In this document: one piece after another, positions 12,160-63,964 of the stretch
Numbering within the stretch: the first letter of the stretch is position 1
How the letters are laid out: each line of letters begins with the position of its first letter
From: Phallusia mammillata
Taxonomy: Eukaryota
Length of the DNA stretch: 64,000 nt
Direction of reading: 5' to 3'
NCBI GenBank assembly: GCA_965637545.1
Contig: OZ281494.1
Coordinates: forward strand, 14,880,001 to 14,944,000
Program-made: the position numbers and the translations under genes
The notes under the pieces: model-generated
What the model was told of the DNA's origin: nothing
What the model saw: the letters and a program-made list of their open reading frames with translations, nothing else
Database searches by the model: none

Positions 12160-20291
<8,132 letters not shown>

Positions 20292-20665: not shown

Positions 20666-21171
20666 CTAGGCTGAGTAGACAATGCTTCATGAACCAGTTA
20701 GTTCTTAAATTATCAGGGAAAGATTTGTTTTGGGGTAATTGTACTGCTTTTTGGACGATCGGCACAATGTTTTAGAAATTTTCCATAACCTTGTCTAAAA
20801 TAGATTTGTCGTAAGTTGGGTTTGCTATTTCAAAATAGGGAAATCCCCAAACAAGCACTTTCGCAGTTTAGCGTTCGGTTGCCAAGTTGGTGTTTCCGAG
20901 GAGTCTGAGTTCAACAAACCGACCTACGTTGTGATCCTAAATCCGGTCAAGCCTCGTTCAAACCAGCCCCTTAAGATCCCAACGCGACGTGGAACATATT
21001 GCAATGTTGGTCCCGAAACAGTTCGGGGACGGCGAAACCAGGAAGATATAAAGCCACTCGAGAAGTTCAAGTACTTTAGCCTACACTTGAAGTTAACCAC
21101 CGACGCGCGACCTATCTGTACATTGTAAAGTTGCGTGTTACAAATGCGAGGGTGACGACCAAGTGTAGATC

Positions 21172-24100
21172 ATGGACAAACAGTTTGAGGAATTAATAAC
21201 ATGTGCTGTTTGCCTGGACCGCTACAAGCAGCCAAAAATTTTACCATGTCAGCATACATTTTGCATGAAGCCTTGTTTACAGAAACTTGTGATAGAAAAA
21301 AGGTAAATAATAGACAATTTTCTAAAACTGTTCTTTCTATAATTTCTTTCCCAGTTTTTATGTGTTAATTTTTTTACACTTAATACTGTGATAACATCTA
21401 ACACTAAAAACATATGTGAAATTTTACAGTATCAGATGCCCTCAGTGTAGATCAACACATAGACTACCTAAGAATGGAATATCAGGATTACCCAACAATC
21501 TAACTATGGTTGCAATCTTGGAGCTTCCTAAAAACAAAAGCCCTCAACTTAAAGAGGCTTGCCAAGTTAGTGATCTGGTGCTTCAAATAAAATAAAAAAT
21601 ACTTTTAATATTGATGATTCTGTTTTCAGGAATGCCTACAAGAAAATTGCACACCGAAAAAGTGTAGTCACTGTGAAAAGAAATTATGTTCATCTTGTAT
21701 ACAAGTCCACTTACAGCAATTGGTTCAGTCCCTTTCCAGGTCGATTAACCAGGTAAAAAAATTGTCTTGACCTGGTATACTGAATACCCTTATTGCAGAA
21801 AAACTATGAAAATTTTTTTTAGCTCAAGAGATTGCTGCCAAAATTAGCTGACATGATATCAGATTTGGAAGAAAAACAATTAAAGTCAAGTACTCTTGCA
21901 TCTTCAGTGAAAGAAGATGTAGATCAGGTACCATCCTTTATGCATGTTTGCTAATAAATTGGTACTTACACTTGTTACTTACACAACACATGTTTTTGCT
22001 CAAACAGGCTATTGATCACTGCATGGCAAAACTGAAAGCAAGGCAACAAAATCTTCATGATCAGATTGACTCATTTGTAGCAACAGAAATACAGTATGAT
22101 TATTACTTTTGATTTGGATATGACACTATCAAATATTACTACAGCTTGCCATTATAAAATGTTTTTAATGATTGCAAATAATAATACAAAGTTAGAGATG
22201 TGCAACCAGGGGGGTACCATCTGTCTGTGGACATTTTGTAAAACGAAGTGAGTGATACAAATTTGGTCATAAAATCATTGAATTGTGTTTGTGGGCAAAT
22301 ATGTACACATATTTTTTAACATTTAAAAAAGTAGGCAGTGGTGGAAAAAGGTTAATAAGTTATGGGTGAAGTGACAAAACCCCTTCGTTCTTTATAGTCA
22401 GCTAAGGATAGAACAAGAAAACATGGAGATGGAAATGGCAATGGTCAACAGTCACTGTGATACTGCTGAGAAGAAATGCAAACTTTTTACAGAATCTGAA
22501 AAGTACCTTATTATGTTTGTTTTTGAGTTGCAATTGAATGTTTCTGATAAACACTTAATTTTTTAGTCCAGAAGTGCTGTCTCCTTCTGAAACCTCGTTG
22601 CTGACACAGCAAAGCAACGAACATTTAAGAAATCTTAAACTGATTTCATCCAATATAGAAGATAAGATAGCCCACAATGTAAAGGTATTTGAACATCATG
22701 ATTACAAGTGCTGTCATTATTGTTTTCATTTTTTTAAATTCTTTTGGACATTGTAGCTTAAATTAGAATTTTGCAAGAAATACTTAATCTAAACACTTGT
22801 TATGTGTACCTTTGTGTTTTGTTTTTCTTTTATGATTATATTGTTTTTGTGCTTGAATGAGTTCCATTTGAATAGGTTTGTCACCTTTGTTATGTTGTAT
22901 ATTTTAAACTCTGGTTGCTACACATGTTAACTGGTTGTTACTCACAATAACTGGTTGCTACACACACGTATATACATACTATTTCTAAGCTAACTCATGT
23001 TAATATTTTTTTTAGCTTATGGACATTTCATGTATCTTTACTGGATGAAATATACTCTATTGTTTTAAGCACTAACATTTGTTGTCTAATGTAAGATGTT
23101 GTCCAAAAGTTGCATGTTCCTGTGTACATATTGTCCCCCTATTCTTTAATATCAAATATAGACACAAAAGATTTATGCCATCTCCATTTTGCAACTCCAA
23201 TATTTGTCTAAGACTTTGTTTACCTGTACCTATTCAACAGTTTCGCAACGAGGGCGAGCGATCACTGCTGAGCGCTGTCGGCTCTTTCGGTGAAATCACT
23301 GTGAATATCCCCTCACGACTTTCGTTCTCACTGGGATCTGACCCTGAAATCAATGATGTTGAAATACACAGGGCGATGCAGCAAGGTCCGCACGGTCGCA
23401 GGAGAACTGGTTTGTTACTTTGATCTGATTTTCACATCGTATTTACAAACGTTTCAAAGTATCTGCTGTAACATATAAGTTTCCAAAAGTGTGGCTGTGT
23501 GGAGCGTTGTGAAGGTCATACCATGAAGGCGTCGGAGCTTAGTCGAAAACCTATGTGTTTTACGCACACACATGCATTACTTAGCACTAAAAATGTTTTA
23601 AATGTCCAGACTGCAAATTCTGCGGATTAAACTAAAAAATGTGTTTCGTTGGCAGAGATCATGGAGTCATATGTCCCCTCATTTTCATTGTCTCCGAGCG
23701 ACACAGTGATCCCAGGCTACTCGCCGTCTCCATCCAATAGCAGTTACAGTCCCCACGAAAGTTTGGTGGATACCAATAACTCACAAAGAAATATGTCCAA
23801 CTTGCCTGTGCCAGGTAAAAGTTTTGTCATATTTTCAGTTATTTTTGTCTGTTCTTATGTCACAACTGTTGACAGATAATAGTTAATCTGTTTATGTCCA
23901 ACAACAGTTGTATAGTTTTGATAGAGTGAAGTTTTGCATTATTTACGCTAAACACCTTTGTGCAAATTGCATTAAGACGCACATTGTGCGTTTTAGTGTC
24001 CATGAAAAATGTGTGTCAATTTGTCAAACAAAACACAAAAGAGCCTTTAGATATTGGACTTGGATTTATTTACTTTATGGTTTGCCCACCCGATCTGTAG

Positions 24101-29591: not shown

Positions 29592-31710
<2,119 letters not shown>

Positions 31711-33962: not shown

Positions 33963-36900
33963 ATGGATAAAAGGCTTCTGCGACGATTTTTAGGTCTGGT
34001 ACTGTGGATTTGTTTGGCCGAGGTAAGGCGCCTGTTTCGCGGCGAAACCTAAAATTGAGTTGCGGTCGTTTTTTGACCAATGGCTGACTAACGAACACAC
34101 ATATTCAATATTGTAACTATACTATGAATGATACTACACTTTTATACACGTAACTCTATATTAATTTTTGCTTGAAAATGTTTCTGTACCGTAATGAGAC
34201 GATACATACGCTTAATTCTTAAAAAAAACATTGGCTTTATGCAAGCGCATTCGAATCGAAGTTAGCTTCGTGGTGTAGGACGTTGATATGCGGCACGAAA
34301 CTAATGCAGCTCTTGGGAATTGGCAAAAGTCCCGTGCGGCCTATTGCTTGACTTAGACATGATGATAGATTCGTTTCGCTTGCGGTAATCTGTACCACCT
34401 CTGTGACAGCTCATATACTGGTTGTACTTTTTTGTTTTTGCTGATTAACAATTCGTTCGTGAGGTCTATCATAAAGTAGGTTAAACAGACGGTGTAAAAC
34501 AGTAAAATGTGACAAGCCTAATTGGAATCCACTTAACAATTCCACATGGACATATGAAATTACGTCAGGATATTTCTAAGTTTGGTTGGTTTGATTTCAT
34601 TACCCAGTAGTTTATAATTTAGGCTTTTTTAAATATACACCAGTTACTCAAAGTTAAATACAGCTATAACATTTATGTTGTATTCACCCAATAACATTCG
34701 AACACTCAAAATCACAGTTTTTTACACTCAAAGTTGCGGGGACAGTTTGTCTTCTGTGTGTGTTAACTTTAGACTGTATAGGTAAGTGCATGACGCTGCT
34801 GTTTTACATTGTTTAACAGGTTGGTCGGAGTACCCCGTTGGGATTCTTCGAGTTGCAGATTGTGCGCTTGCAGAACACGGCCGGTGAACTTCTCAGTGGC
34901 GAGTGCTGCGACGGCACGCGTAACGAGAGTGGCTTATGCCTGGCCGACAGGTGCGACACGTTTTTTCGGGTATGCTTGAAAGCGTACCAGACAAGCAGTA
35001 GCGAATCGAATTCAGAAAAATGCATGTTTGGAACTGCGACCAGTCCTCTGTTGGGAAGTAACTCTCTGGTCGTAGAATCCATCGACGACCCTGACAACCC
35101 AGGTCGCTTTAAGATTCCACTGTTGTTTACTTGGATGGTACGTACCACATTTTTAATTCTCGCCGTTTCGAGTCACAGTGTTACTATTTAAGGCAATTTG
35201 GTTCGAGAACTGCCATGTACATTTGTTGGTGTAAATTAATGCTTCGGCGAGTCGCCAAGCGTCTTGACATAATGTTTATACTTTGCCGGGCAAGTAATCC
35301 AAGGTAAACAACAAAATATGCCAAGCCCACCCTGCTAACATATTCCAATCGTCCCATCACTATTAATAAGCCAATAAAACGTTGTCATGCGGCAATGTTT
35401 GCCGAGTGCGCATTCTACATAAGATGGTGCATTTTGAGTAAACAGTTGACGACGGTTCTACGTTGGTGTCAATTTCGCTGTTTAGCAAAGTATTGCGTTT
35501 TGCCTTTTATGTTCAACCTCATACCACCCTTAGTTAACCTATTTTAGGGCAAAATTTTTACTTAAAATAGCTGAACATTTTCGTGCCGAACGCCAATTGA
35601 ATAAATGTCTGTAAGCTGAAGTATGCGCTCGCGAGCGTTTTAATTTCATACAATTTCAAGTCACACCCGACACGAGGATTGGTGATAATTGCCGTCTGGC
35701 CTCTAATAACACCTTTGCAATTGAGGTGCTTCGTTTAAAAATTTGTACCTCTCTAGCCCTTTATACCTCATTCACGGGACAGTCATGTAATTTCATGGTA
35801 TTGAGCTTTGATTTGAGTATTTTGCTATAGTTCCACCAGTTACGAATAGGTCAACAGTTAGCACGTTTATAGTTAACACAAAAATTGCGTTTGGCGATAA
35901 TGTATCGCGGCGGTTATGTATTGTCTGTTGTCCCAAGCGGCCCTTTGATCCCGGCGCAATCGAGCTTGCTGGCACATTGTGTTGCGATAACGGCTCATTA
36001 CTAAAGCACTGTACGCTTACTCACTGGGCCAAGTCGCTGCTGTGATTGAGTCGTGTGGGTCGAATGGGGGCCCTTATCGTGAACAACAGCCCGGCACTTT
36101 CACATCAAACGCCAAGCAGTAAAACGAGATCGATTTCGATGTAGGGCAGCGTCTGCCAAAGTTGCGTTTTTGGGTTTTACGGCAGGCTGCAATCGTTTCG
36201 AATTTTTTATTTGTCGTTTGTGAACACAGCGCGTCCGGTTTTCGCGCCACGCCCGCTCGCATTGGCATTTGTTTACGTTATCTATTACGGCGACGATTGA
36301 CCGACGATCTCTGGTCAAATGCAGACACCGGGTGTCCAGACCTTAATCCACTTGTGCCTTCGCGCCTTCACGCTCGACGTGTCATTGTTTGTTGGGGTTT
36401 ACCTTTCGTTAAGTGACCGGCGATGAGTAAAGATAACGTCACAGCCGCATTAGAACTTTGCTGTTTGGACTGCTGGGTGTCTGAATGTTTTGTTCTCGTT
36501 ACAAATGCACCTGTGAGTGCAAAATCGTGTCGTGTGCGATACAGCGACGAGTGCTTCGCAGCGCGGGTGTTAGTAAATATTGGGTAACACATTTATTGGG
36601 TACGGCCAAGTGTTCGTAAATAGTACTGCGAAGATGACTGCGTGTTTCCCACTTAGACAGCCTTGAAGCAAACATTTTTTTCGCGTCTTGCGCACGCGAA
36701 ATGCCGGTTCTCACACAGGTGTGCACCTACCAGCGCTAATGGCCGCGAATTCAATTTAGTTTACAGCTTACGTAATAAAAACAGCCCTTCGCACATTCAA
36801 AAGTAAACAAACATTTAACATTTGGGAAAGACCTTAAAAGCTGTGCGGCGAATGTGTATTACACGCTGTGCCACCGTGACGTCTGAAAGTGCACCGGTCT

Positions 36901-39900
36901 AAGCCATCGTGAAGTTGTTGGAACATAACAATGGCCGGCTGTCAGCGCGGAATCAAAGAATGTGTACAAACGGAGCCAGCAATGTCCGGGCGGTCACGGT
37001 TAGGCCTTTGACAATTTCCAGATGTGCTGTTGCCCGCACGCCGTTCCTCTACTGGCGTTTTCACGCGCGAGCGGCTTAAATTGATTCTCGTCTCGCTTCA
37101 AGTTGCCTTGTTACCGGACCAGACTGTGAAATGTCCTCCCTGAACCCACTGCGGCCTGTTGTCGTCACGGCTGGGGCCGGCAACATCATTGACAGACGAA
37201 TTATAGGGAATTTGTTTTGAGCGAAGTTGGGACATGCTTCCGCTTCGTTGCTCTTCATAATGGTACACTGCGTTTGTCAGACCTTTGACTGCCGCGTACA
37301 TTTGTTGCGTAATAGTGTGTAAATTGAATTAAATGGGCGATCGTTCTTCCGTTTGTGACGCTTTTGCCGATTGCTAAAGCCTTTGTAATTGTTCCTTCGT
37401 CTCCCGCAAAGAAACAACCACCAATACATAAGAGGTTTGTTTGATTTTGGTTTGTAGGCCGCAGGGCTTTTTTGCACAATAGCTTTTAGTCTAACTTGGA
37501 AACCGAAATTAAAATTGCGATAGTGTACAACAATACACACTCGCGCAGTGATTACAAAGTTTTATGTGTTTTCATTTGTTATGTAGGTGTGTAAATGTGT
37601 TCGGTCGACGTAGTAACCGAAACTTAACCCGCAACAGTGAAAATAGGTAAACAGAAGTGTATAACCAACGCCAACAAAACAGACACAACCGTCATATGTG
37701 GTCGCATAGATATTACGCCAGCGCTTCCGAAGGCACAAGGTATTATACCTGGCCGTTACCTTTGCCCATATAACACGCCGTCCGTTCCGCCTGTCCAAAT
37801 GACGGGTGCTCGTTTGCTTTTCCCACGGTTCTGTTTGACCGCGACCGCCTAAACTTCGAGCGTCGACTCTCTCTTCTATTTGCGCACTGAACGTGCCTCG
37901 CTCCAATCGCTCGATCGCCTCCGCGCTCGTTTGTAGCCCTTGTCTGTGTTGATTTTGACCCAAACTGAGGTGTTGCCTGTTTCCTGGAGAATCGCTCGCC
38001 GCTCTTCTCTTACCTTGCGCCGCCCGACCTCGCCATCTAATTGTCTGTATCAAATAGCAAGTTCAGCATCAGGAGCATACCTCGCGGCCCAATCCCTGTG
38101 TGATCCCCCGTGCTTATGTCAGGTTGCAGTTCGAACCTCATATTACGGAATCACGAGCCATTTCGTTCCCGGCGCAATATACAAGTTTCAAAGCACCCAT
38201 TTTTTACAATTACGCATTCCTTATTTGGAATGTCTGCCAGAGCAAAAATGAAACGACGTTTCGAAAGTGTGTGTTTATACTCTGGCGAAAATCTGGTGAC
38301 GGTAAACAAAGAAGCAGATGTAAGAATTGATCGTCTTGCACTAGTGATCACGTGTTGCAGTTGGCTTTTTGTGTGCTTTAAACCAATCACCGCGGAATGA
38401 ACCACTTAAGCCGACGTCACTAAACAAGCACCGGCCCAGCTGTAGAGCCTGAGAAAAGCAAGCAAGCGCAAGTTAACGACGCAACTAAACTTCAGTCAAT
38501 GAGATTTCTTTTGTGGTTGCCCATTATGTCCATTGTTAAAAATATGCCCCCGTTTTATCGACTTCGTCGAAATCGGCAAGTAAATTTTTAATGTCATATG
38601 CATTACAATTAAATTACATTATAAAACACAGTTTCTAGCCTGTCGAAAACCAACAACAACACTGAATTCTCCTAAAAAGACGATTAGGACAAATTAGAAT
38701 TTATACGATATGTATGCAATAAAGCAGGAGAAAAGTCAGGCACAAATTATTATTTCAAAGGCTGCGACGTAATATCTCCGAATAGCGTGACGTATTTATG
38801 ATGATAAATCCGCGCGATCAACAGGACTCTCCTTTATATGCGATTATTTCTAAATCAGTTGAGAGACCCAATTTGTGTGTAATCGCATGCGCATGACAAT
38901 TCCTCATTTGCGCACATTTGAGGCCGTATTACGTTTCTCGCCAATCTAGGGCGTACTGTCGTGTTTTGTTTATTCCAAGACTCGAGAAAGACACCTTTTT
39001 CGGTCTCCTGTCTGCTACCACGAAACGAGGCGTTTTCTTTACATGTGTCCAGTACAAAAGCACCCGTGTCCAATGTAACGTTATATCACCAAAGCGTTAC
39101 ATTTCCGACTAAGTAGCAAAGCGCTAGGAGAATGTATGAGCTGGTGACAAGCCGGGGAGAAAGATTTCGGGAATCACAATGGCCAATGTGGGACGAAAAA
39201 CAAACTCTGTGTTTTGTCACTTGCTTGCGTCAGGTGGCGGTTGTAGCTTTTCGCCGATCTCCTGATGTATCGCATTACACTTCGTAGACACTGAGGTGTT
39301 GTGCTTTCGTCGGCAAAAAAAAACGTTTCTATTTTTCACTGAATTAAACTTTCCTATGTCTTGTACTGGCTTTTGTTCTGCTGGACAATCATCTTTCTGG
39401 GCAAACATACTTTGATATCATGTTGTATCTTGAGATATTTTACGTATGCACTGATAAGTACACTTGTCGCAATCTTACATTAGTTATATATACCATAGCC
39501 AGGGATCGGAAATATAATTAAGTATTCTAAAAAATCCAAAGTTAGTTCAAAATATATTATCTTTTTGCAGAGAACATTTACTTTGGTTATCGATGTATTG
39601 GACATGGACCAAAGAAACGGTAAGCCTAGTCATATTGACATTCTTCGTATGTTCAACACACACCCAAACTTCTGTTTATTAACAGGGGATAGTGGTGAAG
39701 AAAATTTTGCGTCTGAGGTGATAGCCCGACATACTCATTCGAGCATGCTGAATCCCAGTTCTGAGTGGCACTCATTAAGCCACAGCGGGCGAGCCGCGTA
39801 CTTGGTGTATCGTATTCGTGTGCGCTGCAACAAGCATCACTATGGTTTTAACTGCACCAAGTTTTGCGAACCACAAGCAAATTATTTTGGACACTACACA

Positions 39901-42900
39901 TGCGACAGAAATGGCAACAAAAAATGCATGGACGGATGGATGGGTGAAAACTGTAACAAAGGTACAAAGAGTAGTTATTTGAAAAAAACGCAGCGCCACA
40001 ATTTGATTTTGTCGGATTAGGAATTAACAAATAGCCCCTTCATGGTGTCGGCGACCTCTGTAGGCTTACGCGCGGGCATCCCCGACCAACAGGATTTAGC
40101 ACGCGGGGGCGCCCGCATCCGACCCAAATCGTAATTTTATAATTTAATAAACCGGATTAGCATCCGACGCGCCGCCTCTGGTTTGCCGCTTTGTCACGTG
40201 GTCGTGTAACTCGTCCAACCACAATAAGCGCTGTCCAAAACGGGGGTGATGGTGTCAGGTGTCCATTCGAGTTCGACAAAGTCAACACGGCCTGACCTAA
40301 CTGCTGTCCAGCCGCCTGCCGCCCGATATACTGTAACACCCTGACTGGCACGCGAACAACGCGTGGATATGTTCCTAGCAAATCTGTTACCGAGTTCCAA
40401 TTGGGATTTCCAGTTCCCCGGCACAGTTAGCTTAGCTAAATTGCCTAGTAACGCGCTTTACCGCGCTTTTCTCACACGTCAACGGGTTGAAAGCTGTATG
40501 ATTATGAAGAAATTTACATTCTTGTGTGCCAAGTTTCGGTCGTTTTTTAAGCACTGTTTTAAATGTTAATTTAAAAGATTAAATTTGAAACTGAATACTT
40601 ACGTAATTAGCCCAAAATATTAGTTAAACCCTCACGCATTGCGATGTACTGTGTTTAGACGGAGAGCTATTCGTATATTACTCATTCGTTCGCATACAGT
40701 CCAAATATAACATCAAATCCACATGTGTTGATATGTTTTTATCTTTGCAGCGATATGCAAAGTTGGATGCAGCATAGAGCACGGCTTCTGCGACATCCCG
40801 GGGGAATGCAAGTAAGTCGCTTATCACGTCTATACGCTTTGCCAGTCGACTGTATATTGCGCGCACTGTCGTATGGACTTTGAAATCGCGATAGCCTATA
40901 AACCGCTGTATCCGGGGCGGATTGTCGTCATTACACAATAAGCCTGACAAAGTTTCGCACCTTTTGATGACCTCCGTGCATGAGTGCGTTCCCAGCCATG
41001 CGCGACGGCCGGGACGCAAGCCGAAACCGGAAACCATCCGCGGAATCGCACTCGGTCAAGTCTTCGGTCAAAGAGCATTTCCTCATCAGCAACCAGTTAT
41101 TTAGCAGATGCGGTCGAGCCTAAGTTACAGGCCATCAGTTATTATTGCTGGCAACGATTGGCCGTTAATTGTTGGATAGCGTGCAGTGCATGACTGTACT
41201 TGTTGCTCCTAGGCCCTTGTAAGCCATTTGATGTTCCCCGCATGACTCTGTTTAGACAGTGTGTCGTTGTAATGGATTTTTTGTATTTTATATTGGAGAT
41301 CCCTATTTACTTTTCCCGGGGTTCTTTATACAGCACATATTCGTTTGTGTTACTGACCAACTTTCAATTCAATTCTAGGAACACAATTAGTTTTGATTAA
41401 AATGATAAGTCATTAGTTTTAAGCAAAACGTATGTGAAGTTATGTTTAGAATTTAAAAGAAAACTTGCGTTATTTGTGTTTCAAACTCAAGCCCTTAAAT
41501 CCCATGTTACACTAGTCAACCTTTATCCAATTCTTAAGTGTTTTGTGGGGCGCGCGAAAACGTCGACCTTGCGCACCTTGAAGTCGTTAGATCGCTAAAA
41601 AGCATTTTCTGTGAGCATTAAACAGCTCTGTAGTTGTACAGGAGCTCCTCTACGTTGAGTTTGGGGGACTCCGTAAACGCACGACGTTAGATCGGAAAAC
41701 TAGTCTGGTCGGCGCCGATGCGAAGTTTTGCACACAACATCAGGTTGTCCCGCACAATAGCTCGGGTCGACCATCTGTGCTTCGAATTACTTCTTGCGAT
41801 TGATTAGTGGATATTAGGAATGGAGCAGCCCGCAACACTGATAGTGCTTTGTCCCGGGCGATAGAGTTGTACTTGCAGGGCATCGGGTGGCCGCCGCCCT
41901 TTGAAGTGGTCCGTTTGATGCCCAGATGAGCCCGCGGTTTAGATGACACACATTTGCTGTCGCCAGTGCGCCTTGCCAACTTGGCACTCGATTACACATT
42001 CCCGAAAGTTTTGCCCTAAAACAACATTCCTGCTTATTGTTGACCTATTTCTAGTTACTTTCTTGCCACTTTGGGTTCCGAAAGAATACTTTGCCATCTT
42101 GCAACTATCACAAAGGGTTTAAAAACGGTTATTTTGTGCTAACGAAGTGTTTTACAGAACAGCGACTGTGAAGCGTTTGGGCTTGGTTTAAAGCAGTTAT
42201 TTTTTCTTCAAATGCGCCAGACGACAACAAACGTGTTGTTTTTCGTGTCAACTTTAGAACTGACTCATTGGAAATCGCGTTAATTGATCAGTGCAATTAT
42301 GTTGGAATGTTTACGCCAAGTGACAGGCTCCTGTATAACCCATATTAAAATACCTTAGGAGCTGGATCCGCTATAACTTGTACACAGTCTTTGTTTCGAG
42401 TACTCCAACATCAAATAGAGCGGTGTTGATTTTCATCCACCACGTTTGCTCTTGTGTTGTATTTTCAAGACAGTGACTAGATAGGGCGGTTTGTTGATTG
42501 GGCGCTCGCTTTGAAACCGTAGGGACCACGCTACAAAATAGGAATGCGGCTTAGGAAATAGACAGGAATTTGTTGTCGAATGGAATTTGTTTGTTGCTAT
42601 CTTGAATATCCGGAGCATTGCCATATTTGTCTATTTGCGCGTTGATTTATTTTTAAACGTTGACAACGCTGTCGTACGCGGGGGGTAGGATAACTGCCAT
42701 ACCGACATTCGAGTTTCCGTAAATTTACGGACCCTTGGCTTGCACACGCAGCGTCGACCCGAGGCCAACTGCACACAGCGACGGCATGTCGCTAAGTGGT
42801 CGTGCTTTGAAATGTTAGACACGTGTTGCTGGGAGCGGCAACAAGACCCACCTGGCGCATCAGGCATGCCACGGACACCACCGGGCCCATCGTCACCAGA

Positions 42901-45900: not shown

Positions 45901-48900
45901 TAACTTCGAGATTGCGCCGCATTCCAGACATAATGGCTCTAATTGTGCTTGTCGGTTATCGCGAGCCGTCGAAACTGGTTTACAAAGCCAGTGCGATGTT
46001 CCCCGCCTGAAGTGATGCGGGCGATTCGTGTTTTTGAAATGCCTGACGCTCTTCCCCACTCCTCTCATCTTGTCTCTTTGTTTCTCCCGTTGCGCATTCC
46101 GCGCTTCCCTGCGGGTCGGGGGCCCGTGGGAAAATAACCCATGCGCGACCACACAGACCCCGCTCCCGGTAGGCCCCATAACCCACCCCAGCCTTGCTGA
46201 GTCCTTCTGGCTTAGTGGTTGACGCGACCGCTGGCTTGACGAATTATTTTCGCTGCTCTGCGCGAGATCGCTATGTTTACTAATATTTACCGGCTTAGCG
46301 CGCAAATTGGCGGGCCGTCAGATTTGCACTGGACCCTCCACTGTCCCGGCAAATTTATGTATCATTCCTTGAAGGCAGTAATCGCGTTTTAATTAGCCCG
46401 ACGGGTCGTGCGGAATACACGCGCCATAGCCAGACAGACTGCTTGGTAACAAAATATTCACGACCGGCTCAATGGCTATGCCCATCTTTAGCCGCGAATG
46501 AGCTAAAGCCTTGCGCACGTTCACGCATACAGGCCAAGTTTACTTTTGCTTGTTGATCAGATAACGACTCCTTGGGCGTGGGAAACGACTTGCTCGGGCA
46601 TGATAGTAATCACGCTTAGCGCGTTCCTCGGCCTGACCCGCGTAGCCGCTTGATATTGCCCGATCGTTTAATAAAACCGCGGTTAATTGGCAGTGTGGCA
46701 GAATTAATGAACGCGTGAGTTGATATTGCTCTGTACGATCGTGGTGCGCTCAAGAGACCTAAATGCGTGTAAGACTGTAATAAGTTGTACACTTTTTACC
46801 TTTTTATACCGGATTGGTATTTATCTGTCGATTTTTTGGGTTACTGATTAGCTAAGGTTATGAAGGTTATTTGCAGTCACGCAATCTAAAATGTCGCAAT
46901 TGGACTTGTGTCGTCATTATTCCAATAGTCCAGTTGCTAAAAAGGGGGAACCGCTAAGCCGGTGTTTCCATCTCGTTGTCTGACAATTTACGTGTCTCGA
47001 CTCTGCGTACCTTGTAACTCTTGCGAGCAACCGCTATCTATGAACAATCGCGTGCATTTGGATACACGCTGCGGTAAAAGTATGCCCCGTTTTGTGGTCT
47101 AAGCCCATCAACAGATAAGGATGGTTGTTGCTTGTATTCTGCAACACGGTCTTGATATAGAAACTGTAGATGGTTTTGGATCCATGGTTTAAAGGTCCAG
47201 GAGTGGAGAAGGAGCTTGCCTTGCTTCACGAATAGCGCGGTGTCTGGGATTAAGCCATTCAAGCAGTTAATTGCGCACATAAGAGGCGGTGAAGGGTCTG
47301 TGACTGATATCATCGCTTTTCATAAACATTGTGCCTGAGCAAAACTTACTGTACAGTGTTGTGATGAAGTAAGGAGAACGTCCCTAACCCTTGTTACTGT
47401 TTGCTACCACCGAAACTTGTTCACGAGTCACGTTAGGTCTTTATTGCTGACTTGCAATCTGTATTTTGATCTTAGCTTTTATTTTATTGCGTGAGTGAGT
47501 AGCGTTGGGGGCAAGTTCCTAGCGCACATTTTACATTTATTTTCGATACCGACAATTTTTTTAGGATTGTGTTTTAAAATGCAACATACCAAGTGTTTAT
47601 CATGCAAGGATTCGGTTAAATTTTACCTTATTTCTTCATCAGGTGCAGACTGGGATGGCAAGGTGAACGTTGTGACAGTTGCATAACGTATCCTGGATGT
47701 TTGCATGGAACGTGTCGCGGGGAAACATACGACTGCCAGTGTGATACAAACTGGGGTGGCCTTCTCTGCGACAGAGGTAGGACGTCTAATGCACAATCAC
47801 AATCGAAAGAAATATACTGAACTTGTGTTCTATGTGTTCCAGATCTTAATTATTGCGGAACGCATAAGCCCTGCATGAACGGTGGCCATTGCTCCAATCC
47901 CGAACCGGACAAATTTAAGTGCACATGCCCTGAAGGGTACGAAGGAGTAAGATGCGAGATCGGTGGGTACAAAAGTTTTTGCTTGTTGTCAAACTTTGTG
48001 GCCTATTTTTCAAAGTTATTTCATTGACATGCTTAACCGAAAATTACACTTTTCAACACGCGGTTAAGTGTGTGTATTTTAGCTTTAGAGCTTAGACGAA
48101 GTCGTGGCAATTTATTAAGTTCTAAAAGAAATAAGTTTGATATGTATTTAGAATCTTTGACACAAATCCGTGTTATCAAAACTTTTTGTTTACATTTCAC
48201 TATGCGTCTTTCGGCAAAAAATGCGCAGCGATATGTTTTTTCATGGCCTTCTGCCTTTTCGAGTGTTAACTACGAGTTGTTTGTGTTAGGGTGAGTGTTG
48301 CTAGCTCGCGGTCGACATGTGAGTGTGTGTGTTCTCCGGCGTGTGTGCATCATCCCATGAGCGCCGCCTTTCGCACGCTCGTCTATTTCTGGGCCGATCT
48401 TAATCTCGATTTGATGACTCGCGCGTTTCTCTACGACAGAGTTTTGCCCCACGCTCTCGCCTAAGCCCGGTTATTACACTTAGATGTAACGAATGTGCGC
48501 CTGTAATCAAATCCAAATTGAGCCGACTCCCGATAAAAATTGGGGTCAATACTACGAGTCAAACTGCTGTACTAGTTTTACTCGCTTTTACAGCTGCACA
48601 TTTTTTGTGGACCGGTCAGTGATGCCTGCACATAAGGGAGAAACCATTTTTAGAAAAACTGTGCATTTGTTTCGTGTAACTAAGCGTTTTATGCCCAACT
48701 AAACGTATATAGGCCACCAAAAGGCATTTTCAATCATTTTGCGTTTGGTGCTACAAAACCTTATAAGCTCAATATATACATGGTTTTCGAACACCACATA
48801 TTGGGAGTCCAAGAGAACGCCTGGTTCAAACCACATCCCATCTGCGGTGAGATCTTAACCCTAGAATCCGAAAACAATAAAAGCGCACCTGGTTTCAAGA

Positions 48901-51900
48901 TAAGCCTGCTTTATCGGTGCAACCCGCTTGGCGCTTGCTATACTTCCACCGTCAGAAACGTGATGAAATGTGTGATAAAAACTTAGACAATATCTCCTTA
49001 TCTCTACCAGTGTACGCTATTTGCTGGTCCACTGTACTACGTCTTATGCTTGTGTTTTTTGGTGTTTGCAGTTAAATACGCCTGCGTCTCGGATCCGTGT
49101 GAAAACGGGGGGACTTGCAGAAACGTTGGAAGGGGATTCAGATGTCAGTGTAAAGACGGGTGGACGGGAAAGACTTGCGAAAAGGGTAAGTGCATTTTTA
49201 TCCATTATGTGGGCAATTTGACGATAATTTACCGTAGTGAAGGTTCATAAGGATGTACTGCATATGTTGGTCTGCCGTATTTCGCCTGTCGTATGCTTGT
49301 ATCAGAAAGGGCTTTACTGTCGGAGTACAGACAGATTAGCGTTTCCCTAATGTCTAAACATTGGCTCTATGCCTGAACTCAAGATAATATCTGTGTCGAA
49401 CGCCGACCCTTATGAGGGGAAGCTGGAAATCAGGGCATAAGATGCAAATATTAGCGTTATAAATGACGAGTGGCTGTCGTGTGATGCACCCCGGGCTTCA
49501 CTTGTGAATAATTCACTCGCGTTATCGTGCCTTGATCGCGCTTGCTTATCGGCAGCGAAAATCTCGACAATTTTATTAAATCGCATTGCGCATTTTCGGC
49601 TCTGGCCGGCTGCGTTTGTTTTTCGGCCAGCATGCGTTTACGCAGGAAAGAAGGTTTGTTGTGTTGGTGTCCGCGCGACGGCAGAACGAACACGCTTTTG
49701 TTTTCCCATGGCGCCTAATATGCCACACCTTAGCGGGAAAATCAGACTGCTTAGTGTTGATAAACAAAACTTTTGTTGGATTTCACATTAACGGTGCATT
49801 TATTTCGACTCTTTAAGTATCTACATGGTGATTTTGCACATTGCTACAATGACATGTTTTAAAGCAGTGCTTTCTAAGCTTTCGGACATGCTAAACCCAT
49901 ACGTTGTGTAGTAAGCTAATCAATACCAATCAATTAACTTTCTTAATGCATTTTGTGAAATTTAAGACTTCCGCCGAACGATGGTACATGTTTGTTGGAC
50001 CTTTACGCTATTGAATAGGGGCCAGATAAAACCACTGCTTTGTAGTTGCCTCTGTTAATGCTTTGGCCTGTGCAAGACAGTAAGTCGTTGTGGTATATTT
50101 TAGCCAAAGCAGAGCAAATAATTGTGCGCAAAAAAACTCTGCACAGAGCTGGCACACACGCTTGAACAAAGCAGCAACACCTGCTGTCGAAATCGCCCAT
50201 AACCCCAAAGGTTGTTGTGTCTTCGCCTCTGGAAGCTTGCTGTCGCATTGTTTTCGCTTCGGTCTAACGACTTTCTCTTCCCCATAAGCCCAAAGCCCCC
50301 TGGTCCCTGCTTCCCAGCCAGGCTATAACGGTACGCGCAGCAATATCTCCGGCTATACGGGTCATCTGTCTCCCGCCCTGGGTCGCTGCCGCCCACCAAT
50401 CTATTCTTGCTGGTAGGACTTTCGCAGTTTATAATCGCGTATGCTTTGACACAGTGCAGCCGATGGGGTTTGCGATAACCCACGCTCGCAACACAAGTAT
50501 TTTCGTTTTGCACACCGATAATGGAGTAAAAGAATTCCTGAATACCGAGGTTTTGCTTCTTAACCTGACGCCTTTTGTGACCCCGAGTCCGGCGCATACG
50601 ATCAGTTTTCGGTTAATTAATCACAAATGTCTGAGACATTTTGAGATATTAGCGGGATTTATTTCCGGATGTTTTTAAAATGTGATCCAGGAATCTATAA
50701 AAATCATTTCCGAGTGATTACAATTTTATGTCAGTTTATCTTATATTTAGGGTTTGGGTAAACTAAATGACAGTTTTTTTTGGCATGTGACGTAAGCTTT
50801 TTGGAGGTGCAATACCTATGGGAACCAAATACTTCTTCAAATGGCCTCGCAAAAACGGGAATTTTTAAAAAGACAACACCAACCAATTGGCGTAATCCTT
50901 CGCGCCAGGGGCCCTTTATGTCGCTAGCCCTAGCGAGTGATCTTTAGCAAATCGACATTTCCGTGTTTGTCGGTAAACATGAAACGTCCCAAGTGACACT
51001 CGAAACAGAAGCCGCGTCTCGGGGTCCAGGCCGCGGGCCGCAGTTTTTAGCCAAAGCGGGAACCTGTCAAGGTAAACACAAATAGCAAGCAAGTCATTGG
51101 AGGATCCGGTACACCCATGACGTCACTTTTCTCGTCATGTCGCTGGATTCCCGAAACCCAACGCCTCAGATGTTGCGCTTTTGTTTCCCGTGTGTGGAAA
51201 GACAGCCGGCAATCGATCTGTTGTTGCCGTTTTAATTGAAACAACTTTATCTCGCATTCCCCGTCGCGTCATCATATAGAAGCAGGTGACTCATTAGACG
51301 GAACGTACTCTATCACTCCCACCGTCCCTGACTCACACCGATAGCTGGCGGGTACGGCACCTTTTGCGCGTTTAATTGCCTGTGTCAGGAGACAGGGTGA
51401 AGAATTAAGATGCTTCTGCATGTGAGACTGCGTTTAGTACTTCCACGAGCTCGTCACGCTGTTTCTGACTCGCTGCCAGCATGCGGGATCATGTTACTCC
51501 AGCCTTATGCTGATTGTTTTCCTTTTGCACCCGCTTTCTACTTGACCCAAGGCGCAGGCGGCGAGGCGAGGAGGCGTAGATCGTCAGGTGGTGCAGCGCG
51601 CTCACCCTTACTGGCCCCGCGCACCGCGCCAAACCATTTACGGGTTTCTTTTCCGCGCTGCTACCTCGTCACGTGCCTGTGCGCACGCAGTTGTCATAGC
51701 AATGTGGAACAGAGGTGAAACATTGTGTTAATGACGCCGCGAGATGCTGAAGCTCTTCCGCCGCGTGAAACATGACTGAGCGAACGCTGGAGTGCCGTGG
51801 GAACGTCTGATCGTAGCCTCGCTCGAGTGTCGTGTCCTCAGCCTCATGATCGCTAATTTTTCACGCCCGCTGGCCTACCCTATGTACTCCAGTGCTGCGA

Positions 51901-54900
51901 CATCCATTACGCTGGCTGATCCGCGCCTAAAACGCGACCTGGCTCCGCGCTAATCGCCCCTAACAAGGCCCAAGTGTACTCGGTCACACTCAAGGCACCG
52001 AAATCGAGCCACGCAATAACGCTTTGGATCGGATCGCTGTCGCCCGACCCCTGCGTCCCCATCGCACCCTCTAAGGAGAAAACCGCCGAGTTTACTTTGA
52101 CCAACTTCCCCTGGCGCCGTCAACGACTGTCCGAGGCCCTGAAGTGCGTGTCCATAGCAGTTGGTGTAGCTGACGCACTGTCCCATACGTGTGACTGATC
52201 CGTATGTTCCACTTCTCTCTGCAGATATCGATGATTGCGAGTCCCAGCCGTGCGCCCATGGTGGAGTGTGCAAGGACTTGGTGAACGGATTTTCTTGTCA
52301 ATGCCCGGAACACTGGGAGGGCGTAAACTGTCAGCTTGGTAAGTACCTCAAAGCATGTGTGATTTTTTTGCTTTGATCATATTGATGGACAATTTTACCA
52401 GAAAAGCACACCTGATTTATAACGTATTTGTTTTATGTCAACTATTTGTGTTTTCTGGAGTCTTGTTGTTGCTGAACGTCGTTGGATTAATATGGTCGTC
52501 ATTTTGGACGCATATCCGATTGTTTAGCCTGTGTGCGTGGGAAACAAAGTTGCTGGTTAATATTCTGCGGTTCTCGCGGAAGTCACAATAGAATAGATTT
52601 TCTGTCGCTTCAGAGTGTTTGTTGACTCACATATTTAACGTATGTAACATGCGTTTAGTCGAATGTTCGCACGTTGACTGTTTATGATGTGGAAGGCTTT
52701 CGCCTGTGTCTCGAGCGCTCTCATCGCGACCGAAGTGTCGTGCGAGAAAACCCCGATGTTGACTCAGTGGCGCGCGATGACACCAACAAGTGTATGACAC
52801 TGCCCACTGGATTATCTCCTGTGGCGCCAATCAACACTCGATGCAAAACCGAAGTGACGCCTTAAGACCGGAGCAATGGCCCTCAAACGCGCCCACACGA
52901 TCAGCATGTACCACTGTTTATGATTCGCACCAAATCAAAGCGGCATCACTTCTCGTCCATTAACCGGTTTGCGTTTCGGCTCGAGACCGAAGAACCCGTG
53001 AGAACCCAACGCGCAAAGATCAGCGACATATCCATGGGATTTCGTATTGCGACTGGATCGCACCACCCACACAGTCGAAAATGACGCACTTGAAAATGTC
53101 ACACGTCCCCGTGCTCGCCCAGCCTGTATATAACCAGTAGACTTAATTAAATTCGCCTATTGGCCGGGATTAGGGCAACTTGACACCCCGACGTGTAGAG
53201 CGTTTCCTCATTATAGCTGCAACTCTGCTGGGGTTAAAGTAAGACAAGCGCAAGGCCATATCCTCCGTGACCGTTACTCCCGTTATCGCCTTTAACATCG
53301 AGTATTGGCCGCACAACACGCATCCTTGAAGAGCTTATTTCCTATCGTGTGGTGCCACAACAAGGCCACTAACAGCGCGAAGAAATTTAAGCAACGATTA
53401 GCAAAGTTCATGTCTATGCGTTAACTACAACATGGACTGTTTTCCTGTTTACGTCAAAGGCTCTGCAAACTTGGGAGATTGTAAATAAACCAAGATTTAT
53501 ATGCAAACGGTCGTGTTTACTTTAATTGCTGCAATTGATTCGACTGTATCCGTATTAGGGTTCTTCGCTTTCGTTGCATCATCAACCTTACCTCGCCTTC
53601 GATAATTGTGTCGCGTGTGAACCCGATGCGAGACGCTCCCGCGAGGCCAAGTTTACACCGAATTCCTGGCGTTTAACGTTGCAAGGGGCGCAACTGTCTG
53701 TATACACCGTGCATATACGATTAAAACCCGCTCTGGGTCTCTTCTGCCGCTTGCTGCAAGCCAAGTTTACGCACTTAGGGTTTCTGTTTACAGTTGCTCC
53801 TGCCTCAAGTCTGTTTTTATCCCCCAGCAAAGTCGTGGCAGATCTTCTAATCGGCCGACTTTGGGCTATTTTTGTGACTGCGGTTAAGGGAATCGAACCC
53901 GCAGGCTTTTGTGCCGGTGTGGCGCCTGTCTGTTGTGGCACTCAATTTCGACGCTCGATTTGCAGCTTTGAGCAGCAACCCGCGCTGGCGATCCGATCCT
54001 TCCTTTGTTAGAGACTGAAAGCAGACGCGATGTAATTACCCATCCATCTAAGTGCTTGTTGACGCAATTCAGCGACTAAGGGGTTAGATTTTCTGTTTGG
54101 AGCTTTCAATGCATTGTAACGAACTCACAATTGAAAGGTTTTCGCGCAGAGCCCGGGAAACCGGAGTTAAGGCAGTTGCACCGAGGAATGTTATTGTAGC
54201 GCCACATAAAAACGCGACTTGCACTGGAAGACTTCATTGCTGAGAAACATAAAACGCAGCTTCAATGGCGAGCTGAGAATTTCGAAAATAGAAAATTGAG
54301 AAATGGGAATGACGTTGGTTATTGACAGGCGACAACAGTCATTCGAATTCCCGCATCTGCTGGCTCCACCTCAATTGTGACGTTGAATCGGGAGTCGGTT
54401 GTCGCTCGTGTAACGCTGCCTCTTCGCGCAGACGCTCGCTGGCTGCGTGCACTCGGCTGGAAAGGAATTAGCATTGAAGAGTCGACAACGCTACAGTCAC
54501 AACAGGTCATTAGGAGCTTGGAACTGCGTGCCATCGCAACGAACAATCGACCTTTGTAGGGGGATAACGTGCGTTAGTGGTGCAGGCTTTCTTTGCTGTA
54601 CATACGAGTCCGGGGAACTGTATGATGCTTTATCGGTTATTTAGTGCCTGATCAATGCAATAAGTTTAAACCCAGTGACAATTAAATGTCTAATATAACA
54701 CATTAGAAATTGTTTATTAGTAACCACCACGGCTTAAATCCAGCGTTTAGACTATAGGTATTAACTCATCCGTTTTCTGAGCCCTTCCGCCGCGGATTAA
54801 ATGTTGCATGTAAGTGATCGAGGTTTGTTAAACGCCTTCAAGCCACAGCCTGCGGTTTTCCCACACCGGCCCGGACACAGTGAGGCGAGACGCTTGTCTC

Positions 54901-57900
54901 GATTTCGGACGGGCGAAAAGATACCGCACTTAATTGCTCACCACTCAGCGAGAAATTAACACCAGAAAGTCAGCGATTTTTTTACCTAATAAAGACCGGA
55001 ATAAGACAACAATGACAACCAGCTTACGCGCGCTCCAGGTGATACAGTTGTACTTACAAGTTATAGCTCTGGTAGGTCTATAGTCGGTTTATAGTGTTTT
55101 TCAGATAGTTTATCGACGAAAAAAAAAACTCGCTGAACTTTGTGGCTGACATGAGACCTCTGTATATTCGCGTTAATACTCTGTATATTCTCTATATATT
55201 AGCGTTTGGAAATATCCCTACCAGCAGCTTAGTAACTCATCGGCACCAATTGACCAGTAATCAAGCTTTTTCCCAAAGTTCTCCGACAGTAAACGTTTGT
55301 CCGCAAGATTGGTACATAAAACATGGCTTGGACGGACTTTGTGTATTGAAAGTTACCAGTGGAAGCATAGCAACGTTAATGGCCCTGATGGTGGTGTGGT
55401 GTTCGTCACCATCTCAGCCAGTTAACACGTCCCGGCACGTCTCGTCCATCTCTGCCGCCTCTACACTTCGCCTGCGCCTCACACTTTGCGCCGAGGGCGG
55501 CAGGAATTTCACCGCGCATTGTTGGAGCGCACCGTTCCCACGTTCACCGAATTGCTTCACTCAGGCCGCTTAAAATCGCAGCGAAATTCCGCGCTCGCTC
55601 TGTTTTCCTTGCATGCTTGTAGGCGTATAGATCATCAAAGCCGTAACGGATATTCTCTGAACAAATGTGACTGTTTACACCTATATGTCACCACCGCACG
55701 TACCTTATGTCAAAGCCATGTTGTAAAAGTCTTGACGAAGTGTTTGTGAGCAAGTTTTGTGCAGCTAACTATAGAACACATTTGTAAACGGGTTTTGTCA
55801 CTGTCAGCATTTTTTTCGGCTTTTCCGGTTGGTAATGTTATTGAAAAGAGTGGATGTTTTTTCCATCACGGATTTTTTTCTTATCAGATAAGAACGAATG
55901 CAACAACAGTCCTTGTGTCCACGCCCGAAGCTGCCACAACCTCCCAGGGAAATATCACTGTGTGTGTGAACCCGGCTGGGACGGACGGAACTGTGATATC
56001 AGTGAGTTAAAAACAGACTTTGCTGTTAGCACATCGGTTCCTGTTTCTCACCATAGTTCTAAATTTGAGCTCAAAATTACCAACTTTTAATACAGAATTT
56101 TGTTTTTTGTATGAACTACGCCTTTACTGGAACACATTGTGTTTCTCGGATTACTTCTAACACCGTTTTTATCTTAAATTATTCAGATGTCAACGACTGC
56201 AATGGACAGTGCAAGAACGGGGCAACATGCGTGGTAAGTTATAACACGATTTCCCTTTGCGTAACCACAGCACAATTTGCGAACCCGCAGCGCATTTCCT
56301 AACACCACAAACTCATTAGTACCCAGTTGGTAACCCGCTAATCCCGTTAAGAATTAGTGAGCAAGCCGTGAGTGGCCGGAACTTGTATTTCGACCTGGGA
56401 TGACAAAGCAGATTACGGACTATGTTTCTGACATCCTCGCTTGGTTCCACTGGCGGGTGGCCCAGTGCTGGGCACATCAAAGGTTGCTAATACAACACGC
56501 CGAATTTCCCACCATAAAAATGATAATTTTCCGCTTGTTCGGCGATTGCACTGTTTCAGCATAGCACCGAAAATCGACTCGCAATCCCAACAGTTATTTC
56601 AGCAGGCTGCGACAATCTTTTGTCGTCGGCACTCCAGCTTGTCCGCGCGCTTATGTTGCCTAGGCACTGTTTTATTGATACTTCGGATTTGTCGCTCGTA
56701 CATCGCCATAATCGCGCCGTTATTGAAAAACATATATCCGCCATGCCAAGATCCGACTCCGGGCGTCTTTTGAAGCCCGCCTCGCGGCTTTGCTGCTTGT
56801 TTTCGCACCTGTACGCTTTGTCGCACGAACAGCCAACACATATATGGCGTCATCGAAGTCACTAATGTGTTTCAAGGGCCGAGCTGTGTATATACCACTG
56901 GTTACAAACCCGTCATGTGGTGTCGAGTGGCTGGGTTTTGTGTCGTTATGGCGCCACGTCGGTTGTCCCGGCAAAAGCAGGGCGAAAATGGCAAAACGCG
57001 ACGATTATTGCGATTACAGTTGCGTTTGCTTAAGCCGCGCGCCCTCGACGACAAATTGACGCGCTATTTCGGGCTGTTTCGAGTCCCAGGTTGAAAGCCG
57101 CCGCCGAACCCTCTAGTTCTCGCGAACGCTTTGTTGTTGGCAAGTTTGTGTTGAAAATGAACTTGTGCCATCTCGCGAACTTTGCCAAGGCCTTTAATCG
57201 GCGCGGAATTGTTGTAATTTCAATAGCGCGGGACATTCGTTCATCGAGAAAGGTCGTACCCACCGTTACGGGATAATCGATGTAGAAACGCAACCTCCAT
57301 ATAGCTGTATTATTATAGGTAATTTCAATTTTCATGTACGCCATCTGCCTTAATACCTTATAGTGTGCTAAAAACTTGGTCTTATTTTTTGTTTTTATAA
57401 TAAAAATATTTTTTCATAGGATCGAGTCAATGGTTTTACGTGTATGTGTGCTTTGGGATTTGAGGGAAGAACTTGTGAAATCAACACCAACGACTGTGCG
57501 GACGACCCATGTCTTCAAGGCGGTCAATGCGTTGATGGTGTCAACGACTTTCAATGCATTTGTCCAGCCGGCTATTCCGGCAAAAGCTGCCAGGCAAGTA
57601 AAACTTGATTTTGAGCGAATTATAGCTTTAGTGCTAGTATTGCTTGTTATATGGACCAAAAACGGCCATTTTAAGGAAGTTTTGTTGAAGCCAAATTTTA
57701 CCAGGACAATAGAACACAGTAATCAGATTTTCTATAACGCCAGTCGAGTTGAAAGAGTTCGATTCACTAGCAATCGCACCATCAGGCCCATTGGACAATC
57801 ACCACCACTACCCATGTCCCGCCGCATCAGTACGCCATCAAACGACTGGGCGATTGTGACATTAGCTTGTGTGCCTGGTTGCTTTCACAAAAACACCGCG

Positions 57901-63900: not shown

Positions 63901-63964
63901 GACGGCCTTAACTCTTACACGTGTATGTGCCTACCCGGATTTCAGGGACCGAACTGCGAGTCAA
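33963..63964 (+). CDS. JAG: Jagged/Serrate Notch ligand, exons 1-15 (gene continues past the window)
   Basis: Phase-consistent exons 33963-34022 (signal peptide [20 protein letters not shown]), 34820-35137 (MNNL/C2), 39571-39619, 39686-39961 (DSL), 40751-40811, 47643-47776 (DOS EGF1-2), 47843-47962 (EGF3), 49072-49185, 52225-52338, 55888-56001, 56187-56233, 57420-57593 (GC donor), 59305-59455, 60919-61083, 63851-63964. At least 11 EGF repeats, and the interrupted EGF10 ([16 protein letters not shown]) is diagnostic of Jagged/Serrate rather than Delta. Confidence 0.96.
36708..60227. promoter_or_regulatory. Su(H)/RBPJ consensus sites (YGTGRGAA) dispersed through the Jagged introns
   Basis: Matches at 36708, 37820, 40469, 43373, 45578, 46125, 46577, 51796, 52536, 52997, 54858, 55535 and 60220 (both strands, counted by eye). 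Confidence 0.55.
60016..60065. repeat. 27-bp tandem duplication in Jagged intron 13
   Basis: aacg(t/c)ggcctggtg(t)actttaaca occurs twice. Confidence 0.8.

Follow-up and report, generated by a model that had tools for sequence, protein, structure and literature searches.

Can a Jagged protein still act as a ligand for Notch after both arginines have been replaced in the loop with which Jagged ligands bind the receptor? This question is raised by a 64,000-nucleotide stretch of the genome of the ascidian Phallusia mammillata (contig OZ281494.1, positions 14,880,001 to 14,944,000 of the forward strand; referred to here as the window), which contains the first 15 coding segments of a Jagged gene. 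At 39862-39894 on the forward strand, the DSL domain of this gene reads TTT TGC GAA CCA CAA GCA AAT TAT TTT GGA CAC, and translation of the window gives, in JAG1 numbering, F199 C200 E201 P202 Q203 A204 N205 Y206 F207 G208 H209. We conclude that the loop has probably diverged by ordinary point substitutions and that, judged from sequence, the ligand would most likely still be functional, with the contact between its DSL domain and EGF11 of Notch ("site 2") weakened or re-tuned.

The loop lies in an exon that finishes the C2 domain and encodes the entire DSL domain:

39862-39894, forward strand: divergent DSL receptor-binding loop, Phallusia residues 202-212.
39686-39961, forward strand: exon 4, end of C2/MNNL and the whole DSL with its six cysteines; AG acceptor and GT donor, phase 1 at both ends.

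The product of this exon (93 residues) matched the Pfam DSL family with 63.8 bits (E 1.7e-17), where the curated cut-off is 24.2 bits, and the last part of MNNL/C2 was matched as well. When compared with protein chains of known structure, the best match was Jagged-1 (5UK5 chain B, E 1.1e-31), followed by Jagged-2 and Drosophila Serrate. The alignment is gapless at the loop, which reads fcrprddffgh in human and rat JAG1, fcrprndffgh in JAG2 and fcrprddqfgh in fly Serrate. All six DSL cysteines, which are invariant columns in the alignments, are kept in Phallusia, as an earlier interpretation made from the letters of the window (the sequence-only reading) had stated. A search of all six frames of the whole window, introns included, found no second DSL-like exon or motif, and the introns therefore conceal no canonical alternative to this exon.

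We considered whether the loop could be a sequencing or assembly error, or the mark of a decaying gene. A region search with the Ciona protein returned P0161, annotated as "jagged protein [Phallusia mammillata]" (CAB3257643.1 / UniProt A0A6F9DGC2, 1622 residues), which carries an identical 17-residue string spanning the loop. P0161 was compared with the window by script, exon by exon and at the codon level, using 15 coding segments and no joined spliced model; over P0161 residues 1-670, 664 were exact, 1 was different and 5 at exon junctions were left unscored. The sole difference is a leucine in the window (CTA, 61068-61070) where P0161 has arginine at residue 628, which is presumably a single-base allelic difference. 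Since it differs at this residue, P0161 is an independent record and no copy of this assembly, and its possession of the same motif makes an assembly error very unlikely. The coding frame is free of stops, and GT-AG boundaries delimit each of the three introns around the DSL region. The gene model taken for Jagged in a study of P. mammillata (Phmamm.CG.MTP2014.S230.g05754), whose in situ probe encodes P0161 residues 1458 onward, has a listed RNA sequencing (RNA-seq) fold-change value. Taken together, these observations leave an artefact or a pseudogene with almost no probability. The gene is the genuine full-length Jagged of Phallusia mammillata, and the substitutions first noticed in the window are real: they are given by the translation, lie in a clean exon and recur in the public protein.

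A second way to discount the loop would be to assume that the Phallusia genome has a canonical Jagged at another locus, the copy in the window being a paralogue free to drift. Among the best 120 of the 780 hits of the region search, one Phallusia protein only was present, and the other named tunicates were also represented by one Jagged gene each among those 120. We therefore regard a divergent paralogue as quite improbable.

The remainder of the protein is that of a typical ligand. The membrane span and tail are encoded beyond the window and were read from P0161, in which Pfam identified MNNL/C2 (1e-43), DSL (6e-16), EGF/hEGF in 11 and 9 stretches, and PF23575, the ferredoxin-like JAG1 juxtamembrane domain (6.3e-08). 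Hydropathy gave one strong hydrophobic span at about residues 1090-1112, beyond which lies a tail of about 510 residues with VSV at its end. The defining parts of a Jagged/Serrate-type ligand are thus present, namely a signal peptide with C2, a six-cysteine DSL, a long EGF array, and a membrane anchor with a tail, and P0161 is predicted to be a complete membrane-bound ligand and no secreted fragment. The statement of the sequence-only reading that the rest of the gene is intact agrees with this domain set and with the match between the exons and CAB3257643.1. What departs from the type is the conserved Notch-binding face, in which R201E, R203Q and D205N have occurred and F199 and F207 are kept. 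An AlphaFold2 model of Phallusia C2-EGF3 resembled JAG1 overall (4CC0_A, E 1.7e-38; template modeling score 0.64-0.67); the model confidence (pLDDT) in the first half of the DSL, loop included, was about 47, and 52-54 in the canonical Styela control, and such models are uninformative on the loop.

That these residues form a Notch-binding face, as the sequence-only reading stated for F199, R201, R203, D205 and F207, is in accord with a review of the Jagged-1 DSL structure (Cordle et al. 2008), in which F199, R201, R203 and F207 (with D205 in the figure) make up one face of the domain and mutants affect both cis and trans interactions (PMC3415683). The natural variation of the loop was assessed in a census of 295 single-DSL proteins and fragments, assembled from representative, region and profile searches, in which eleven loop positions were tabulated. 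The residues found at these positions include:

F199: Phe 151, Leu 90, Val 21, Gln 18; Phe in Phallusia.
C200: Cys 295, invariant; Cys in Phallusia.
R201: Arg 198 (67%), Val 47, Lys 21, Gly 8, Glu 7; Glu in Phallusia.
P202: Pro 278, Ala 12, Ser 3; Pro in Phallusia.
R203: Arg 285 (96.6%), Leu 6, Tyr 2, Thr 1, Gln 1; Gln in Phallusia.
D204: Asp 208 (70%), Asn 69, Ser 9, His 6, Ala once; Ala in Phallusia.
D205: Asp 249 (84%), Glu 22, Asn 15; Asn in Phallusia.
F207: Phe 264, Val 14, Tyr 6, Ile 6; Phe in Phallusia.
G208: Gly 295, invariant; Gly in Phallusia.
H209: His 290, Asn 4, Gln 1; His in Phallusia.

The loop had been described as an invariant basic motif. This description suits R203, which is near-invariant, but it is too strong for R201, D204 and D205, each of which is replaced in a sizeable part of the census. 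Of the tabulated positions, C200, P202, R203, G208 and H209 are the only ones that are invariant or nearly so. The residues other than arginine at 203 come from caecilian JAG2 (Leu), a fragment (Tyr), one repeat-type protein (Thr) and Phallusia itself (Gln). At position 201, many fish jagged-2b clusters are among the Val, Gly and Asn forms, and Glu is rare, not unique. Within the binding face, it is the change at position 203 alone that breaks a near-universal feature.

Separately from the single-DSL ligands, the top-scoring matches to the DSL exon were proteins with 5 to 14 tandem DSL-like modules and without an obvious C2 domain (P0001-P0009, P0011, P0014, P0015, P0036, P0044, P0046 and others), and Gln, His, Lys or Thr is often found in their loops at the place of the ligand Arg 203. 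Another match, P0158 (Acipenser sinensis, UNVERIFIED_CONTAM), contains the same DSL segment four times in 1939 residues and looks like an assembly or annotation artefact.

We next placed the Phallusia loop among those of tunicate and tunicate-like sequences:

Styela clava (XP_039254307): FCRPRNGFFGH.
P0010: FCRPRNGFFGH; groups with Styela in the exon tree.
Clavelina lepadiformis (XP_076815804.1): FCKPRSGFFGH.
Ciona savignyi (H2Z2M1): FCKPRSDFFGH.
Ciona intestinalis (XP_078492109.1): LCKPRSDFFGN.
Fragment P0017: FCKPRDGYHGH.
Fragment P0157 (Logan SRR20381876; locus L003): FCEPRTDHFGH; the closest exon found, with 59% identity.

Erosion of the acidic pair is seen already in nearly all of the tunicates sampled, position 201 is no longer Arg in the Ciona/Clavelina/Phallusia group, and the loss of R203 is found within this series in Phallusia only. 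For closer relatives of the Phallusia exon, a word search with the exon yielded P0157 as its one candidate, and a profile built from eight tunicate exons returned no tunicate-like fragments besides P0010, P0157 and P0017. An N-C-T sequon, which predicts N-glycosylation, lies at 39847-39855 in the window, four residues ahead of the first Phe of the loop. It occurs in 13 of the 295 single-DSL ligands, these being all of the tunicate or tunicate-like ones and none else; the carriers include P0010, P0017, P0157, P0159, P0160 and P0171, and sharing the sequon supports a tunicate origin of P0010, P0017 and P0157. A glycan beside the Notch-binding face might in part explain the freedom of the loop to drift in tunicates.

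The divergence is not confined to the loop. At 113 positions from C2 to EGF3, chosen for at least 95% conservation among 112 vertebrate Jagged clusters, Phallusia deviates 18 times, Ciona intestinalis 13, Clavelina 12 and Styela 5. About 7-8 deviations are found in Phallusia only, and these are scattered across C2, DSL and EGF1-3 with no focus on the loop. In the exon tree, which has 85 columns and leaves the branching among tunicates unresolved, the Phallusia branch is not long (0.24, with 0.44-0.46 for P0017 and P0157). The pattern is one of gradual, lineage-specific divergence of the receptor-binding region; the domain has not collapsed, and the loop has not been the target of a burst of change.

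Based on these comparisons, we conclude that the RPRDD loop has probably eroded gradually throughout the tunicates, with Phallusia as the end point: position 201 would have passed from R to K to E, D204 would have been lost, D205 often lost, and R203 replaced by Q in Phallusia only. Notch would then be held through what is kept: on the DSL face F199, F207 and H209, and besides these EGF1-3 and the C2 domain, which contacts EGF12. The DSL-EGF11 contact would be weakened or re-tuned in its electrostatic part. We infer that Phallusia Jagged most likely still binds Notch as a membrane-bound ligand and that site 2 is most likely weaker or re-tuned. This proposal is supported by the retention of the hydrophobic residue at 199, P202, F207, G208 and H209, and by the census, in which only the residue at 203 is truly rare. 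Site 2 has been found to be more variable than site 1 across the human ligands (PMC5538765), and DLL1 carrying all of the DLL4 contact residues was functional in mice, with regions beyond the known interface also of importance (PMC6202052).

Two sets of published results weigh against a functional ligand. The human JAG1 variant Arg203Lys is associated with extrahepatic biliary atresia and lowers both Notch binding and Notch activation (PMC5538765), and since this conservative change has such an effect on its own, the combination of Q203 and E201 could be severe. Further, in situ hybridisation for Jagged in P. mammillata embryos gave no clear signal (PMC9238270), which lends no support to a signalling role at that stage. 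The same results, together with the position of Phallusia as the tunicate that deviates most at the vertebrate-conserved N-terminal positions, would fit a low-affinity or cis-only modulator, which activates Notch in trans inefficiently and mainly titrates or cis-inhibits the receptor. The precedent is mammalian DLL3, which inhibits Notch in cis and does not activate it in trans (PMC2171428). In DLL3, however, degeneration extends over the entire DSL, and this domain is not the only reason why the protein fails to bind (PMC2171428), whereas the Phallusia DSL is well conserved apart from five residues, scores far above the Pfam cut-off and keeps its six cysteines, F199, F207 and H209. It is 53-59% identical to canonical relatives, and neither the degenerate DSL nor the reduced EGF array of a DLL3-like protein is found; C2, EGF1-3, the membrane span and the tail are also intact. 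We consider a modulator of this kind rather unlikely. The sequence-only reading had offered a low-affinity or decoy ligand as one of two outcomes, and its two parts have fared differently. Since the protein has all other parts of a ligand, a dead or decoy role is disfavoured, and a weakened or re-tuned DSL-EGF11 contact is the most likely reading.

The other outcome was a compensating change in the receptor. Here EGF11, and perhaps EGF12, of Phallusia Notch would carry changes matching those of the loop, and the pair would bind with normal affinity and be partly private to the lineage. The stepwise shift of the loop over the tunicates, with the remaining DSL under constraint, would be expected of such a pair. 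Blanchoud et al. described rapid evolution of the DSL ligands of tunicates and raised the question of an adaptation between ligand and receptor, the question posed here for Phallusia, and in four tunicate genomes they counted one Notch receptor gene and one or two DSL ligand genes, with three in Botrylloides leachii (PMC5882950). A single Notch gene and few ligands would ease co-adaptation, but Phallusia Notch must serve one or more Delta-type ligands as well. A co-evolved pair is a possibility that we hold only tentatively. It is similarly conceivable, if somewhat doubtful, that Jagged and Notch of this species share a non-canonical DSL-EGF11 contact in which an uncharged or acidic loop replaces the two arginines. 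Fast-evolving tunicate DSL ligands are already published and the Phallusia Jagged sequence is already public; our preferred explanation remains a ligand that functions with a weakened or re-tuned site 2.

The exons of the gene other than exon 4 were located in the window as follows, all on the forward strand:

33963-34022, forward strand: exon 1, start codon and signal peptide, 20 codons beginning MDKRLL, with a hydrophobic core; donor GTAAGG.
34820-35137, forward strand: exon 2, first part of C2/MNNL; Pfam MNNL 7e-29.
39571-39619, forward strand: exon 3, a 49-nucleotide C2 exon of 16 codons plus 1 nucleotide, followed by a 66-nucleotide intron.
40751-40811, forward strand: exon 5, first half of EGF1 (AICKVGC...GECK); donor GTAAGT.
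47643-47775, forward strand: exon 6, EGF1/EGF2; codon-level match to P0161 256-299, end placed within 1-2 nucleotides.
47842-47961, forward strand: exon 7, EGF3; P0161 300-339, boundaries within 1-2 nucleotides.
49071-49184, forward strand: exon 8, EGF repeat; P0161 340-377.
52224-52337, forward strand: exon 9, EGF repeat of calcium-binding type; P0161 378-415.
55887-56000, forward strand: exon 10, EGF repeat; P0161 416-453.
56189-56233, forward strand: exon 11, first half of an EGF repeat; P0161 455-469, start within a few nucleotides.
57420-57593, forward strand: exon 12, EGF repeats; P0161 470-527.
59305-59454, forward strand: exon 13, EGF repeat; P0161 528-577.
60918-61085, forward strand: exon 14, Jagged-type interrupted EGF (VIDSC...), containing the single difference from P0161.
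63853-63963, forward strand: exon 15, next EGF repeat; P0161 634-670, with the gene running on past the end of the window.

For every exon in the window, similarity was higher to the Jagged of Ciona savignyi than to Jagged-1 of a fish. The 66-nucleotide intron between exons 3 and 4 (39620-39685) is in frame and free of stop codons, and a plain open reading frame (39565-40020) spans it; retention of this intron would add 22 residues within the C2 domain.

Other putative coding sequences were noted in the window. Exons of a serine/threonine kinase with an 11-residue motif and a DFGFA motif lie upstream of Jagged on the opposite strand (30934-31710, reverse strand). A gene of TRIM type is suggested by two open stretches on the forward strand (21169-21303 and 21618-21767), which encode a RING finger (CAVCLDRY...CQHTFC) and a cysteine pattern resembling a B-box. 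A further open stretch (16256-16570, forward strand) encodes the Walker A motif GQPGCGKTS, as is typical for exons of AAA-type ATPases. An Rfam scan of the 64-kb window gave no matches.

Arg 203 is among the best-validated receptor contacts of the Notch pathway, at which even a change from Arg to Lys is disease-linked. Phallusia, with Gln 203 and Glu 201 in a Jagged that is intact elsewhere, thus provides a natural experiment on the extent to which the DSL-EGF11 contact is required. The loop also bears on whether ligand and receptor co-evolve. If the contact has co-evolved, Phallusia would offer a naturally re-wired and partly private ligand-receptor pair in a tractable chordate, which could reveal contacts of the interface that are dispensable. 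The embryos are transparent and easily injected, and a swap of the loop is directly approachable. The weight of the case is limited by the variability of position 201 in many animals, and the effect of the loop on function is a prediction from the protein sequence.

Compared with known systems, the nearest structural reference is human and rat Jagged-1 (5UK5 chain B, 4CC0 and 2VJ2), with which Phallusia Jagged has the C2-DSL-EGF architecture in common and to which the DSL exon aligns without gaps (E 1e-31). The two are alike at F199, C200, P202, F207, G208 and H209 and differ by R201E, R203Q, D204A, D205N and F206Y; the Phallusia protein is also longer (1622 residues), with a much longer cytoplasmic tail. 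Human JAG1 R203K alters the same residue, but as a disease variant in a human protein that is paired with human Notch, whereas we regard the Phallusia change as fixed in the species. Mammalian DLL3 resembles Phallusia Jagged in having a diverged DSL (PMC2171428), and differs in being of Delta type, in the degeneration of its DSL throughout and in its fewer EGF repeats. The closest named relatives are the Jagged proteins of Ciona, Clavelina and Styela, which have the N-C-T sequon and the loss of D204 in common with Phallusia but keep Arg 203, with R or K at position 201 in place of Glu. P0157 comes nearer, with Glu 201 and the sequon, and differs in keeping Arg 203 (AGA) and Asp 205. An independent natural loss of R203 is found in caecilian Jagged-2 (P0189, P0314-P0318), where an otherwise intact Jagged has the identical loop FCRPLNNFIGH in two genera (Geotrypetes seraphini XP_033808556.1 and Microcaecilia unicolor XP_030069527.1). 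In these proteins residue 203 is Leu and not Gln, R201 is kept and F207 is replaced by Ile. Vertebrates, moreover, normally possess JAG1 as well, whereas Phallusia shows one Jagged among the matches listed.

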